A DNA stretch of 64,000 bases from Ascoidea asiatica JCM 7603 (Eukaryota; Fungi; Ascomycota), in the NCBI GenBank assembly GCA_001600695.1, contig BCKQ01000001.1, forward strand, positions 70,423 through 134,422. The letters run 5' to 3'. The notes beneath the pieces are model-generated. The model was given only the letters and a program-made list of their open reading frames with translations. It was not told the origin of the DNA and searched no databases. The translations under genes were made by a program, and so were the position numbers. Of this stretch, positions 45,783 through 52,545 are shown in pieces (the first letter of the stretch is position 1; each line of letters opens with the position of its first letter).

Positions 45783-46933
45783 TATAATATTGTATATTAA
45801 TATTTTGAATAAGTAATTATAAAATTACTAAAAGAAAAAAAGGTTTTTTTTTTTGGAAGTTAAGCGAATGTGTAAGAAGTTAATATTAATTTAATGAATT
45901 AAAATAAACTTAAGGAAAAAAAAGAGAAAATGAAAGAAATAATTTAAAGAGATAATTAAAAGAGATAATTTGAAAGTATTTATATAGAATACAGAATCAG
46001 ATTGAAATATATTTCATAAAGGAGTTGAAGGAGTTTGAAATTAGCAATTAGATTAATATTTGGTTACCCCCAAGTAATAACTATAATACAGTAAAGTATT
46101 GTTTATTTAGTTGCTGATAGTGTTTAACCGGTTATGGTTTATTATTTAATAATATTTAATAATATTTAATAATATTTAAGAAGTATTTGTTGAATGTTAC
46201 ATTATTCAATGAAAAGTTAATGAGATTTACAAAAAAAGTGAAGTAAAAAGTAGGCTGAAACTTATTCATTCGTCAATTTCATTGGGTAATTCTCATTGAA
46301 TTGTTTACTTTAAACACAGAGTTTAATTCTTTGGAATGAAAGGTTTAAAAATATCACAATTTATATAACTGGAATGAATTGAACTTTTTTAACTTAAGTA
46401 TTTCAAGAAATCATTGAAATTTTTTTTTTTCATTAAATAAAAGTTTCAACATTTGAATTTGAATGAAGTTGTTGTGGGTAATATTTAAGATTCAAGTTAT
46501 TTATGGTTCAAATGTGGGAAAGAATTGAATAAATTCATTCACCTGAAACAATTATTCAAAAGAAGATTAATAAATTAATTAATCAAAGAATTGAAGAATT
46601 AAATGGACAATTTAAAGAAAGATCTGATATTTTCTTTGTTAATTCTTTCATTCTTTCTTTCTTTTAATGTTTTTTTGTTTTTGTTTAAGAGAATGAACCA
46701 AAATAAACCAAAATAAACCAAAATAAACCAAAATAAAATAAAACAAAATAAATATTCAAATTCAGAGCCAGTGAGTCGAAGCTCACGTAAGCACTCGCCT
46801 TGCCCCGTTTGCTTCTCCTGCGCAACGCAAACCGACAACAAAGTTGATCAAATTCTGCATCGCCTGATCTCTCCGCGCGCAACGTCGCCACAACCCACGC
46901 TTTGTTTTGCCACAACTTCCAAACTTTTCACTT

Positions 46934-47003
46934 GAGTAATACTAAGTGAGTAATACTAAGTGAGTAATACTAAGTGAGTAAAACTAAGTGAGTAAAACTA
47001 AGT
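46934..47003 (+). repeat. five tandem copies of the 14-mer GAGTAAWACTAAGT
   Basis: Units start at 46934, 46948, 46962, 46976 and 46990. The unit matches the outer end of the inverted repeat at 50002. Confidence 0.95.
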
Positions 47004-47408
47004 GAAGTCACAGCATCTCTCGTGGCAGATACTAATTTCCTATTTAGTTAATATCCGCGTCACGTGTTTAAAAAATGAACTTTTGAAAAATCTCAGCGGA
47101 AATCACCCAAAATCCGGGAAATAACCGCATTTAAATCCGACAAAGGATTTAAAATCGGGCCCGAAGGTTTTAAGAGGGACAGGAAAGTATTAACATGGGA
47201 AACCAGGTACCCTCTATAAATGGAACGTATATTTTAAGAGATATGTTTAAACCGACCGATCATTTACCGGAAATGACAAACCGGTTACTTGACTCGTAAA
47301 TGTTTTTTGAAACACCGAGGTCTGTTCTGAAAGAAATTCATATTTCAAAACTCAAACAATTGAAAAAAAGAGACTTTATTCCTCTTTTCACTTAGTGTTA
47401 TGTTACTC
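46934..47408. mobile_element. degenerate inverted-repeat-bounded cassette (copy 1, MITE-like)
   Basis: The left end GAGTAAAACTAAGTGAAGTCACAGCATCTCT matches the 50002 repeat. The right end TTCACTTAGTGTTA(TGTTA)CTC is a decayed inverted copy. Confidence 0.45.
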
Positions 47409-47664
47409 TTGAAATACTTCAATTTTAATTGCAAATTCAATCTGAAATTACAATAAAATATCAACACGTGACAATTGCAAATATGTATAACTAACAGTTA
47501 CATGCCTGACTGCACACAGCACTACATAATAACTGGTTGAAGCCAATTTAATGGGACTGAAACCTTAAAACATGAGACCACTTTTATGGTACACTATTTT
47601 ACAAAAGTTAATATCAAAAAATATTTATTAGTGTAAATGATTTAAGTAATAATAATTATAATAA

Positions 47665-47873
47665 TTATAATATTGAAATTAGAAATTTAGAAATTTGATT
47701 AAAGAAATTTGAAATTTTTCTTTTATTATTGTTATTTTCAATATTATTTTCAAAATTATTTATATAATTTAATAAAATTTTTTTAATATTTTTAAATTCA
47801 TTAAAATAACATTTAAATAAAATTCCATTAACATGTTTTTTAATAAAAATTGGTTTAATAATTAATTTATTAT

Positions 47874-47907
<34 letters not shown>

Positions 47908-48531
47908 TAATTTATAATAAACTGGTAAAATTTTATTTAAATAATTTTTTTTTTTAATAAATTTTATTATTAAAGAATTTAAATTAAATATAATTTTAGA
48001 AAAATTATAATTACCAATTAAAATTTCATAATTTTTAAAATTTAAATCATTATATAAAGAAATTAAATGAATTGAATTAAATTTATTTAAATTTAATAAA
48101 TTACAATAAATTTTAAATTTATAATTATAATTTATAAAATTTTTTATATTTAAAAATAAAATTAAATCTGAAAATGGATGAAATAGAACTAATATTGTAT
48201 TACCATTTGATTTACCATTTGATTTACCATTTGTATTATTATTTGAATTTGATAATTTTAAGATATTTTCAATTAAATTTGCATTTGTATATGTATTTTC
48301 ATAATTATTTATTTGAATTTCTAATAAATCAGATTTACAATTAAATTTCCAATTAATTTGATTATTATAAATTTTAAAATGAATTGAATTATATATTTCA
48401 TTTACATTTTCATTTTGAATCTTAAGAGGTAAAATATCTTGACATATTTCATTTTTAAATAAAATATTTGCTTGTTTTAATAAAATTTTATTCATTTTCA
48501 TTTTAATTTTAATTTTAATTTTAATTTTCAT
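47665..48531 (-). CDS. extremely AT-rich orphan ORF (288 aa, I/N/K/L/F-rich)
   Basis: An 867-nt stop-free frame in DNA where TAA would be very frequent by chance. No recognised domain. Confidence 0.55.
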
Positions 48532-50001
48532 TTAATATGCAAAGTTTATAATAGCAAAAATTTAAGCAAGATATAAAGTTATTTAAATAATGAATTAATA
48601 AATTAATAAATTTTATTATTACTATATTAAGTAAATGAAATAAGTTTATAATATTCCCCAATTAAGATAATTTATCAATAATCAATAATCAATAATCAAT
48701 AATCAATAACTAACAATATTCATTTGAAATTTTATTTCTTTGTGTCGCTTTATTTCTGAATTCATATTTTACAATTTCTTAAACTTCAAAACTCACTTTC
48801 TTTAGATTTCATCAAAAAGGGAATCGAACTTAAGTGAATTGAACTTAAGTGAATTGAATTGAATATGACATTGATTTCATTGATATTTGATCTTTGATCT
48901 TTGATCTTTGATGGCTATTTATTATAGTATTACCAATTGGAATATACATGCTGTATATTTATATATCAAATATAAATAAAGTAAACATATTCCAAAAACA
49001 CAGTGGCAATATATACTGTATATAGAGTAATATTGTATATATAGGGTATACAGTATATCGTCTCCAGAACCGCAAACCTGGCGACGAGGTGTAATTTACT
49101 TATATGTTTTTAGCACAGACTATTTTAGTAACTTAATATATAATTATTTAAATTCTGAAGTTGTAATTACTTTATCAACAAAAAACTGGAAAACAAAAGA
49201 TGCTAAAATTAAATCTGCTGGTCCTATCATTTATTTAAAAAGAAAAAATCAAAAATCAAAAATCAAAGATATTACATCCAATTTTGAATTTTCAATATTT
49301 CCAATTCTTCTATTTTATACTTTATTTGATTATTATCATTGAAAGTGACTTCTTAGGATTAGAAAAAATAATTATTATCATCACAAATATTATAGGGTAT
49401 TTATTTCCTCATAGTGTTAAAAGAGAAACTTTAAAAGAGATAAAAAAAAGCTTTAGGAAATGCTATGATTGAGAAACTTAAAACTGATTTTTTTTATTAT
49501 TTGCGAAAAGATGAGATAATTAAATTGATACTGATTTTTAATCCTTCTACTCCATTTTCTTTCTCACTATATTCTCTTTCCCAGAGCCAAACACTTAAAT
49601 TGACCTTAAGTTGATTGTAATGTAATCAAATTTAGATAGTTTTATGTGGTTTTAGCTTATTGTATTATAGGTTCTTGTTCATAGCACTGAATAAATTATT
49701 GAATTAAAGTATCACAGATATCTGAATATTTAGTATTTACGCTAATCAACAATACTCAATTGTAGTCACTAATTTTGTAATTATTCATCTATCTAATTGA
49801 CCAACAAGGTGAAATCTTTTTGAGCCTGGAATTAGTCTTAGTTTTAACTTATTCAAAGGTCATAATAGTGGAACTTTTAGTACTTAATATAAATGTTCCC
49901 ATCAGGTTACATGGTTTTAAAGGTGTAATTTTAAAGGTGTAATTTTAAAAAAATTAATAATTCATCTGAAGTCGACGATTGGTGGTTACGTGGTTGTTGA
50001 A

Positions 50002-50511
50002 GAGTAATACTAAGTGAAGTCACATCATCTCTATTTGAAGATACAACATTGAGATCTTTGCACAATACTATATGATTGTAATAATGAAGTTGATTTAGTT
50101 TGAATTGATTAATTATTTGAAAGATTAGTAAGAACTAATGATCTTTTTGAAGCTTTGAATAAAATGCATAACAGTAGACATTATTGGATTTGAATCCTTT
50201 TAAAGAAAAGAGTAATAAATAAAAGTGCCGGTCAAATTACTGTTTAAACATTTTGGGATTCATTTGTTTGAGGTGGGCCTCTTTTATTGTTTAAAGGCCC
50301 ACAATTATTTATGGGAAAATGGATTTTGGAGAGGATATATTCCATGGTACGGATAAATAGCTAAATGTCAATATAATTTTTGTTTAAAAGTTGCTACGCC
50401 TTATGGTTCCTAATAAAGTAAGTATGCGCCGTTATAAGGCTGAAAATATCTGCAAACATCTCAATGTTGTATCTTCAAATAGAGATGATGTGACTTCACT
50501 TAGTATCACTC
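50002..50511. mobile_element. 510-bp cassette bounded by 61-bp inverted repeats (copy 2, MITE-like)
   Basis: 50002-50062 and 50451-50511 are reverse complements with only 2 mismatches, and the interior is non-coding. Confidence 0.6.
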
Positions 50512-50718
50512 CTTGACTAGCTACTTGTTAAAAACAATTGAGAAAAGATATTTAGTAAGGATGCCGACACGTGACTTGATATTAGATATTCAATTTTTCA
50601 AATTATTACCAGCTTTGAGGGTGTTGCAGTTACTTACCATCATTTATTCAATATATACAGTATATAAAGTATATACAATATACGATTTTATAAAAAATAT
50701 GTTTATAATTTTTATAAT

Positions 50719-51552
50719 TTAAAGTAAAAATAATGAAAAAATTAAACAAAAAAATGATAAAATAACTTTTTCAATATTAAAATTAGAATTTATTTTTTTT
50801 AAATTTTTATTTTTAATTTCAATTGATGAAATAAATTCAGAAATTTCTTCAAAATTATTTGTAAAAGTTGTAGTAATAGTACTTGTCCATGGTCCATTTC
50901 CAGAAATTCTACTTTCATAAGTATCAAAAACATTAATTATACTTGAATAAATTAAATTATGTTTATATTTTGTACTTGTCCATTGAGTAAAATTATTTAT
51001 TGTTGAAATAAAATTTTTAGATTTATTTTATATACTTATATATGAAGTAATATATTTAAAATCTAAAAAAATTTTAAATTCTGAAAAATAATTATAAATT
51101 TTTGTATAATTATCATTTTCTAGTCTTAAACCAAAAATATTTAAAAATGAATTAAAAATAATTTCTGGAAAATAAGTCATTGAACCTTGAGGTGAAAATG
51201 TTAAAGGATATTTTTGATTTGTAAGAATAAAATTTGTATAAGAATTATTAATTTTAATATTTTCAATCTCAATTCCAGTTTCATTATTAAATCTTAAAGA
51301 TAAAGAATTTAAAATTATTGCAACTGAAGATATATTTGAATAAATATTTTGATCATTTTTATTAATCATTTTAATTTTTGTTAAAATTTCATTATTTTTA
51401 AAATTTCTTGGATTATAACCACCAAAAATTAATGAACCATTAAAATTATAACTGTCAAAAGAATTAAATCTTGCATTTTCAGACATTATTCTTCTATTTA
51501 TATAACCTGAATTTAAATTTTTAATTAAATTAAAGTTTTTTAATACTATCAT
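50719..51552 (-). pseudogene. truncated, stop-interrupted yapsin-like (GPI-anchored aspartic protease) remnant
   Basis: GSLIFGG motif and a degenerate second active-site region (FSPQGSMTYFP). After the TAA at 51030-51028 the same frame continues ~100 codons to a hydrophobic tail LFLSFFCLIFSLFLL. Confidence 0.6.
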
Positions 51553-52084
51553 TTTTTTATTATTACTTTTTTTTTACTTTTACTTTTGGATTGAAGAAAA
51601 GCATTCTGAAAATAAAATAAAATCAGGATATTAAATATTTTTCAAGAAGTTATTTGAATATAAACACAATTATGGTAATATGCAAAAAAAAAACCCAGGA
51701 AAAAGGAATATTGTAATAATATTAAATATTAAGGATTTCAACCAAAGTTTCCAACCAAGTAAGTCACTCTTGAATATTGAAAATATGATAGGAAACAAGA
51801 ACCATAGTCTAATGTAATTGTAACAGTCAATTGATTATAAACTACTTTCCTTCTGAACAGAATAAAAGATTGTTTCTCATTGAAATATAAAGCAGTTTTT
51901 TAACTTCTTTTAAAGTAAAAATATCAGCAGAGCTTGGACCTTTCTGAATTTATCCCTTGGGCTGAGCAGGACACTCCCCGGTGCATTCTGGGACAGCCCG
52001 CCCGGTCCTGTTTCCATTGTCTTTTTCTCTTCACTGTTGCAAGAAGTTGCATCACAACTTTTTCCGTTACAGAAACAAGAAAAA

Positions 52085-52156
52085 TCCGTGATAGTTTAGT
52101 GGCTAGAATTACCGCTTGTCGCGTGGTAGACCGGGGTTCAATTCCCCGTCGCGGAG
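52085..52156 (+). tRNA. tRNA-Asp(GTC)
   Basis: TCCGTGA/TCGCGGA acceptor stem, anticodon arm ACCGC-TTGTCGC-GTGGT and GGTTCAATTCC T-loop/B box. Confidence 0.96.
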
Positions 52157-52159
52157 CTC

Positions 52160-52167
52160 TTTTTTTT
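52160..52167 (+). terminator. RNA polymerase III oligo-T terminator
   Basis: T-run immediately 3' of tRNA-Asp. Confidence 0.8.
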
Positions 52168-52230
52168 GTTAGGACTTTGTTGATGATATAAACTCGATTG
52201 GTCTGAAAACATAAACATTGCCGTTGTTTG

Positions 52231-52304
52231 GCGTAAGTGGTTTAGTGGTAAAATTCGACGTAAAATAGTCACGTGGTCTTCCAGGGTTCTATTCCAGCTT
52301 CCGG
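52231..52304 (+). pseudogene. decayed tRNA-Gly(GCC)-like sequence
   Basis: GCGTAAGTGGTTTAGTGGTAAAATTCGACGT resembles the yeast tRNA-Gly 5' half. The anticodon is lost, the B box is degraded (GGTTCTATTCC) and the stems are mispaired. Confidence 0.7.
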
Positions 52305-52434
52305 TTCTGATTGGTGGACTGGAAGTGAACACCTCTGGCCAATGAGCAGAGCCGAGTCACGTTTCTCTGCCAATCGGCCTTCTCGAGCTTTGTTCCCAGA
52401 AATAACCAGACAAATGAGAATGAAAGAAAGATTA

Positions 52435-52545
52435 AGATAATAAGAGAGATAATAAGAAAGAGAGAAAGAGGGAGAGAAAGAGAGAGAGATAATAAGAGAG
52501 AGAGAGATAAAGATAAAGAGATAAAGAGAGAAAGAGATAAAGAAC
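52435..52545 (+). repeat. purine-rich (GA/GATAA) low-complexity tract
   Basis: Runs of agagag and gataa. Confidence 0.8.

Follow-up and report, generated by a model that had tools for sequence, protein, structure and literature searches.

Class II elements are rare in yeasts, where Mutyl is the described member of the Mutator superfamily (PMC4316626). Target site duplications (TSDs) of 8-11 bp are the signature of Mutator-like elements (MULEs) (PMC6446971). In plants, including rice, Pack-MULEs are non-autonomous, multicopy elements that are bounded by terminal inverted repeats (TIRs) and flanked by 9-bp TSDs (PMC6446971, PMC8277862, PMC8903248); they contain fragments of host genes taken from more than one locus and have short microhomologies at the junctions. 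In a search of the open literature, no Pack-MULE was found in Saccharomycotina.

Two cassettes, A and B, were studied in a stretch of 64,000 nucleotides from Ascoidea asiatica JCM 7603 (this whole stretch is referred to as the window). The evidence is against their interpretation as a new regulatory or centromeric element; they are the shrunken remains of a Mutator-type transposon. Very probably, they represent two internally deleted relics, lying in the same orientation, of one non-autonomous, Pack-MULE-like MULE family. The features listed above for plant Pack-MULEs are shared by this family, which differs from them in its budding-yeast host, its short TIRs (about 48-65 bp) and its presence at fewer than 20 loci; moreover, no more than 87 bp of cargo is left in relics A and B. 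Mutyl of Yarrowia lipolytica (PMC6446971, PMC4316626) is likewise a Mutator element of Saccharomycotina with a TSD of 9-10 bp. However, its TIRs measure 22 bp, it codes for a transposase as well as mutB, and no host-gene cargo is described in those reports. Amplification of a captured host-type gene by a fungal TIR transposon is known from Pyrenophora tritici-repentis, in which histone H3 was transduplicated by a hAT element (PMC3538342), but in that filamentous fungus a whole ORF was carried together with the transposase, whereas the family described here carries decayed fragments of two genes. Relic B can also be compared with the mRover1 MITEs of Lachancea (PMC4316626), which are short internal-deletion derivatives (<600 bp) of a yeast TIR transposon. 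Those elements, in contrast to relics A and B, belong to the hAT superfamily, have 8-bp TSDs and form an amplified family, while A and B are single and unamplified.

A multicopy MULE with fragments of a SPA2-like gene and of an acetyl-CoA synthetase (ACS) gene extends plant-style gene-fragment capture to budding yeasts, and in a small genome its donors and junctions can be read directly. This significance belongs to the family rather than to the locus. The locus itself contributes two deletion derivatives and a same-orientation pair flanking a host gene, and not a new kind of element.

The assembly searched comprised 20,313,720 bases in 71 contigs. Each cassette was found to match many sites in its own genome, and a combination of a TIR pattern search and a full-copy search located the family at 16 or more other loci on 11 contigs, the dispersed copies being at 85-97% identity. 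The TIRs are about 48-65 bp long and have the form GAG...CTC. Six copies of 1.9-2.6 kb were intact, retaining both ends, starting with GAG and ending with CTC. Each of these was flanked by a perfect 9-bp TSD, and the six TSD sequences were all different; a seventh matching 9-bp TSD surrounded a split, inverted copy. The earlier note had listed a non-autonomous DNA transposon family among several candidates for the cassettes, and the dispersed TIR-bounded copies with their TSDs bear this candidate out. Because no long ORF was present in the fully readable copies, the family is non-autonomous. As for a cognate transposase, five PF10551 matches, which are relics of MULE transposases, were found in the genome, and none of the five lay at a family end in a search in which the interiors of several copies were unread. 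The interiors of the two cassettes had been regarded as divergent filler. In fact, cassettes A and B correspond to the left and right parts, respectively, of one 2.2-kb element, and their interiors are dissimilar because they come from opposite ends of it.

Several further observations were made on the copies. An additional TIR end with one mismatch was located at G000:C9:228078-228097. An LTR-like insertion with TG...CA ends and a 4-5 bp duplication divides the copy at C2:2486770 / C2:2499196 near element position 2050. The right end of this copy is found in inverted orientation at a distance of 12 kb, yet the outer 9-bp TSD still matches; the arrangement reflects either an inversion or a misassembly. 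In the copy at C5:133668-137155, the left subterminal region contains, at about element positions 59-281 from the left end, a nested mini-MULE of 220 bp that belongs to a second family and has the 9-bp duplication CCTATTTAG. The end of this mini-MULE, for which the genome holds about a dozen matches, matches the end of a broken transposase element at C1:1.93 Mb. The latter was considered as a partner sharing the TIRs of the present family and was rejected: its end resembles AAGTGAA, but the family TIR pattern was not matched there, and it represents a separate MULE family. At C7:840235-843528, inverted repeats that are at least 561 bp long and 98% identical enclose a MULE transposase with one stop; this is a young, separate MULE family. 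The L078 match was also discarded as a TIR, since its end is LTR-like instead.

The origin of the cargo is apparent from the matches of individual copies. The copy at C5:235880 matches a single gene on C1 in two separate parts, through its positions 429-917 (78% identity) and 921-1481 (83%), and DNA on C12 through its positions 1484-1724 (73%). The C1 donor (G000:C1:908821-917853) is SPA2-like and exceeds 3000 codons, with GIT1_C (Pfam) as its C-terminal domain and a long low-complexity middle, and the C12 donor is the ACS gene (Pfam ACAS_N/AMP-binding). Overall, the cargo was 78-86% identical to the SPA2-like gene and 73-74% identical to the ACS 5' region. A second cargo variant, found in the C14, C2, C1 and C4 copies, differs in its SPA2 piece and has a longer piece of ACS, which in the C14, C2 and C1 copies takes in the first ~25 codons. 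All cargo fragments are co-oriented on one strand, and their reading frames bear stops and frameshifts. Thus, the DNA between the TIRs includes pieces of host genes from two loci (C1 and C12), and both cargo variants occur in several copies with different TSDs, that is, they were amplified after capture. At the family level, this is the structure of a Pack-MULE. Pack-MULE cargo commonly, though not necessarily, gives rise to chimeric transcripts or small RNAs. On the minus strand of the C14 and C2 copies, near element positions 1165-1240, the first ~25 ACS codons continue without a stop into SPA2-derived DNA; in this frame, the ACS start codon is gone and the SPA2 part is frame-shifted.

The features of the locus are collected in Table 1.

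Table 1. Positions in the window of relics A and B and of the DNA next to and between them.
Feature	Position	Strand	Remarks
Left copy of 9-bp direct repeat TTTTCACTT (10 bp with C at 46924)	46925..46933	+	Candidate TSD of relic A
TIR positions 1-14, repeated in tandem four extra times	46934..46989	+	Probably produced by slippage
Relic A: left TIR and left subterminal region, 379 bp	46990..47367	+	Element 1-379, 89% identity to C5:235880
Probable degenerate right end of relic A	47370..47384	-	TIR tip with 7-bp deletion, ending CTC; suggested by TIR alignment
Remnant of ~17 bp that resembles a TIR tip and contains a 5-bp duplication, overlapped by the right copy of the 9-bp repeat (47385-47393); right end of cassette A in the earlier note	47385..47408	-	
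CACGTGAC, Cbf1-type site in flanking DNA, outside the element	47465..47472	+	57 nt after 47408, 81 nt after 47384
288-aa orphan ORF	47665..48531	-	9.8% GC, host-like third-codon-position composition
DNA between the ORF start and relic B	48720..50001	.	Single-copy
Relic B left arm: TIR (1-48) joined to internal sequence	50002..50062	+	97% complementary to the right arm
Family cargo piece, element 1516-1604, 91%	50048..50137	+	Includes 87 bp from upstream of ACS
Family internal piece, element 1738-1813, 99%	50132..50207	+	Microhomologies of 3 bp and 7 bp at its borders
Right subterminal region and right TIR, element 1919-2220, 94%	50201..50511	+	
CACGTGAC, Cbf1-type site in flanking DNA, outside the element	50568..50575	+	57 nt after 50511

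The start of the terminal repeat, placed by the earlier note at 46934 and 46990, was confirmed at relic A, the first 14 bp of the TIR being present five times in tandem from 46934. One terminal motif had been described at four ends in alternating orientation. The shared motif, ACTAAGTGAA, indeed occurs four times in the window on alternating strands, at 46997(+), 47387-96(-), 50009(+) and 50495-504(-), with 0.09 occurrences expected; however, the end at 47408 is far weaker than described, as it matches only about the last 17 bp of the TIR, with a 5-bp duplication inside, and is without the AAGTCAC..TCTCT part. An exact 9/10-bp direct repeat, (C)TTTTCACTT, which had been missed, is present at 46924/5-46933 and 47384/5-47393. 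The 9-mer occurs four times on the plus strand of the window, and the 10-mer occurs twice. Judged from its position, this repeat would fit a relic A ending at 47384, and the right end of the relic appears ambiguous between 47384 and 47408. Inside the relic, GTCACGTG is found at 47059-47066, where most other copies have GTCACGTT. The left flank (46735-46940) is single-copy. A single-copy GC-rich island at 46760-46930 lies directly left of relic A, upstream of a GH17 gene; this island is promoter-like, consistent with MULE insertion into promoter DNA.

The inverted-repeat arms of relic B reported previously were verified as 61 bp with 97% identity (50002-50062 / 50451-50511). The cargo retained at 50048..50137 includes 87 bp that are 79% identical to DNA 450-535 bp upstream of the C12 ACS gene. 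Microhomologies of 2, 3 and 7 bp were observed at the junctions of the relic, and no TSD survives around it. Both arms contain the variant TTGAGAT, which was absent from the other ends compared. Therefore, the shared variant suggests gene conversion between the two arms.

The following history may be proposed. A MULE transposase acting in trans would move the family by cut-and-paste, and the cargo could have entered by gap repair or template switching, as in the model of PMC8277862. Two copies of an older subfamily would then have inserted on the two sides of a host gene, at a distance of about 2.6 kb from each other, perhaps through local hopping. The copy that became relic A may have inserted into an older TIR-like remnant, the tip of which is the 47408 end. 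Of this copy, the left 379 bp and a damaged right tip would have survived, and slippage would afterwards have added four further copies of its first 14 bp. In relic B, three internal blocks were presumably deleted at microhomologies, and 7 bp of the left arm would have been copied into the right arm. The resulting layout resembles the stage of neighbouring insertions in the Pack-TYPE capture model (PMC8903248), with no sign that the pair moved together.

The 288-aa orphan ORF noted earlier is open, and the longest stop-free frame among 500 shuffles was 92 aa. Since the ORF is far longer than those of the shuffled sequences and its third-position composition is like that of its neighbours, it is probably a real host gene. 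It is probably fast-evolving and not cargo. No relatives of its product were found in Pfam, by a word search, or in the ESM Atlas, the PDB or 1.84 billion representatives, and a single-sequence structural model (pLDDT 33) was not usable. Duplication of the adjoining aspartic-protease-like gene was considered as its origin and was rejected, as the similarity was not significant. When 47340-50050 was searched against the rest of the genome, only low-complexity AT-rich matches were obtained among the 40 of 248 candidates that were scored, a search that weak repeats in 47409-48720 may escape. The neighbours were not conserved in a synteny comparison with Ascoidea rubescens and Saccharomycopsis crataegensis. 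It is likely that the orphan ORF is in its native position.

It is quite unlikely that the locus is a frozen gene-capture intermediate, in which the relics bracket a whole lineage-specific gene, the outer TIRs could carry the unit, and the TIR-to-Cbf1 spacing arose from Cbf1-guided insertion or selection. A related proposal, that relic A, the orphan gene and relic B form one 3.6-kb composite that moved or is poised to move via its outer TIRs, as in neighbouring-insertion capture for plant Pack-TYPE elements, is very unlikely. It is true that A and B belong to one family, have one orientation and lie 2.6 kb apart, that the outer TIRs are largely intact while one inner end is degenerate, and that this layout matches the pre-capture arrangement (PMC8903248). 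The earlier note had also suggested a possible 3-bp target duplication from CTT at the two outermost ends. CTT does adjoin both outer ends of the 3.6-kb unit, but it is not a TSD: the duplication made by the family is 9 bp, the 9-bp outer flanks of the unit differ (TTTTCACTT vs CTTGACTAG), and a chance 3-bp match was seen also at the copy C5:133668. Moreover, relic A has a candidate 9/10-bp duplication of its own, and relic B has its own intact left TIR. The middle, apart from the low-complexity AT-rich matches, matched its own locus alone, with neither a donor nor a second copy. Because the family makes 9-bp TSDs and the tested middle is single-copy, the composite is unsupported, and two separate relics are the preferred reading.

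The second argument of the earlier note concerned the Cbf1-type sites, the spacing of which was taken as a conserved grammar that suggested function. The equal offset exists at both ends in the window, as CACGTGAC begins 57 nt past 47408 and 57 nt past 50511, and the naive chance of this is about 4e-5 to 4e-4. A check of distances at the genome-wide copies did not uphold the functional interpretation: CACGTG was situated at 57 nt in 0 of the 22 other family ends, at which it was found at 16, 43/70, 66, 83, 191, 263 or 361 nt or not within 500. As regards spacing, the earlier note had itself named such an outcome as a refutation. The 57-nt offset is not a property of the family. If relic A ends at 47384, the equality itself vanishes (81 vs 57).

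The TIR tip and the Cbf1 site at 57 nt from it could nevertheless make up a functional or once-duplicated local unit, either as a selected nucleosome-positioning or promoter module or as an old tandem duplication of the end, the site and the downstream gene. In its favour are the exactness of the offset and the sequence ACACGTGAC at both sites; without gaps, the two spacers agree at 25/56 positions (P about 0.02), and past each CACGTGAC site, at a distance of 150-190 bp, there is the end of a minus-strand ORF. On the other hand, gapped alignment of the spacers gave P=0.44, the DNA beyond the two sites had no significant match (P>0.8), and the two minus-strand ORFs do not align (P=0.11 and 0.67; BLASTP E=0.036). 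Together with the absence of the offset from all 22 other ends and the value of 81 for a relic A ending at 47384, this makes such a unit most improbable. The equal offset is probably due to chance, and, as far as their sequence indicates, the CACGTGAC sites are most likely ordinary Cbf1-type sites in the host flanks. In the whole genome, GTCACGTG was counted 465 times vs 86 for a control pattern. Outside the window, CACGTG lay outward within 500 bp at 7 of 22 ends and within 100 bp at 4 of 22. These counts may hint at insertion into Cbf1-marked promoter regions.

In the consensus point centromere, CDEI is followed by a very AT-rich spacer (CDEII) and then by CDEIII, which contains CCG. Interpretation of the cassettes as a pair of structured ncRNAs, as an invertible switch or as a centromere element, which the earlier note had also entertained, is hardly credible: relic B does fold strongly as single-stranded DNA (z=-10.35), but the fold is due to its TIR arms, and an Rfam search of 46500-52500 matched only a tRNA-Asp at 52085 and neither cassette; CDEI-like sites are present beside the cassettes, but the adjacent spacers are about 82% and 68% AT and not CDEII-like, and no CDEIII-like CCG motif follows; the cassette interiors are accounted for by transposon and cargo pieces, and family copies with TSDs occur on 11 contigs.

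Some minor observations were made on the surroundings. A bacterial promoter scan was empty; its model is bacterial and irrelevant for yeast. An aspartic-protease-like frame with one stop at 51028 occupies 50719-51552 on the minus strand, and seemingly its C-terminal half alone is present; ESM Atlas matches to PF00026 at 0.92 are weak evidence for this assignment. The GH17 protein of the neighbouring gene has its best relative in Ascoidea rubescens.
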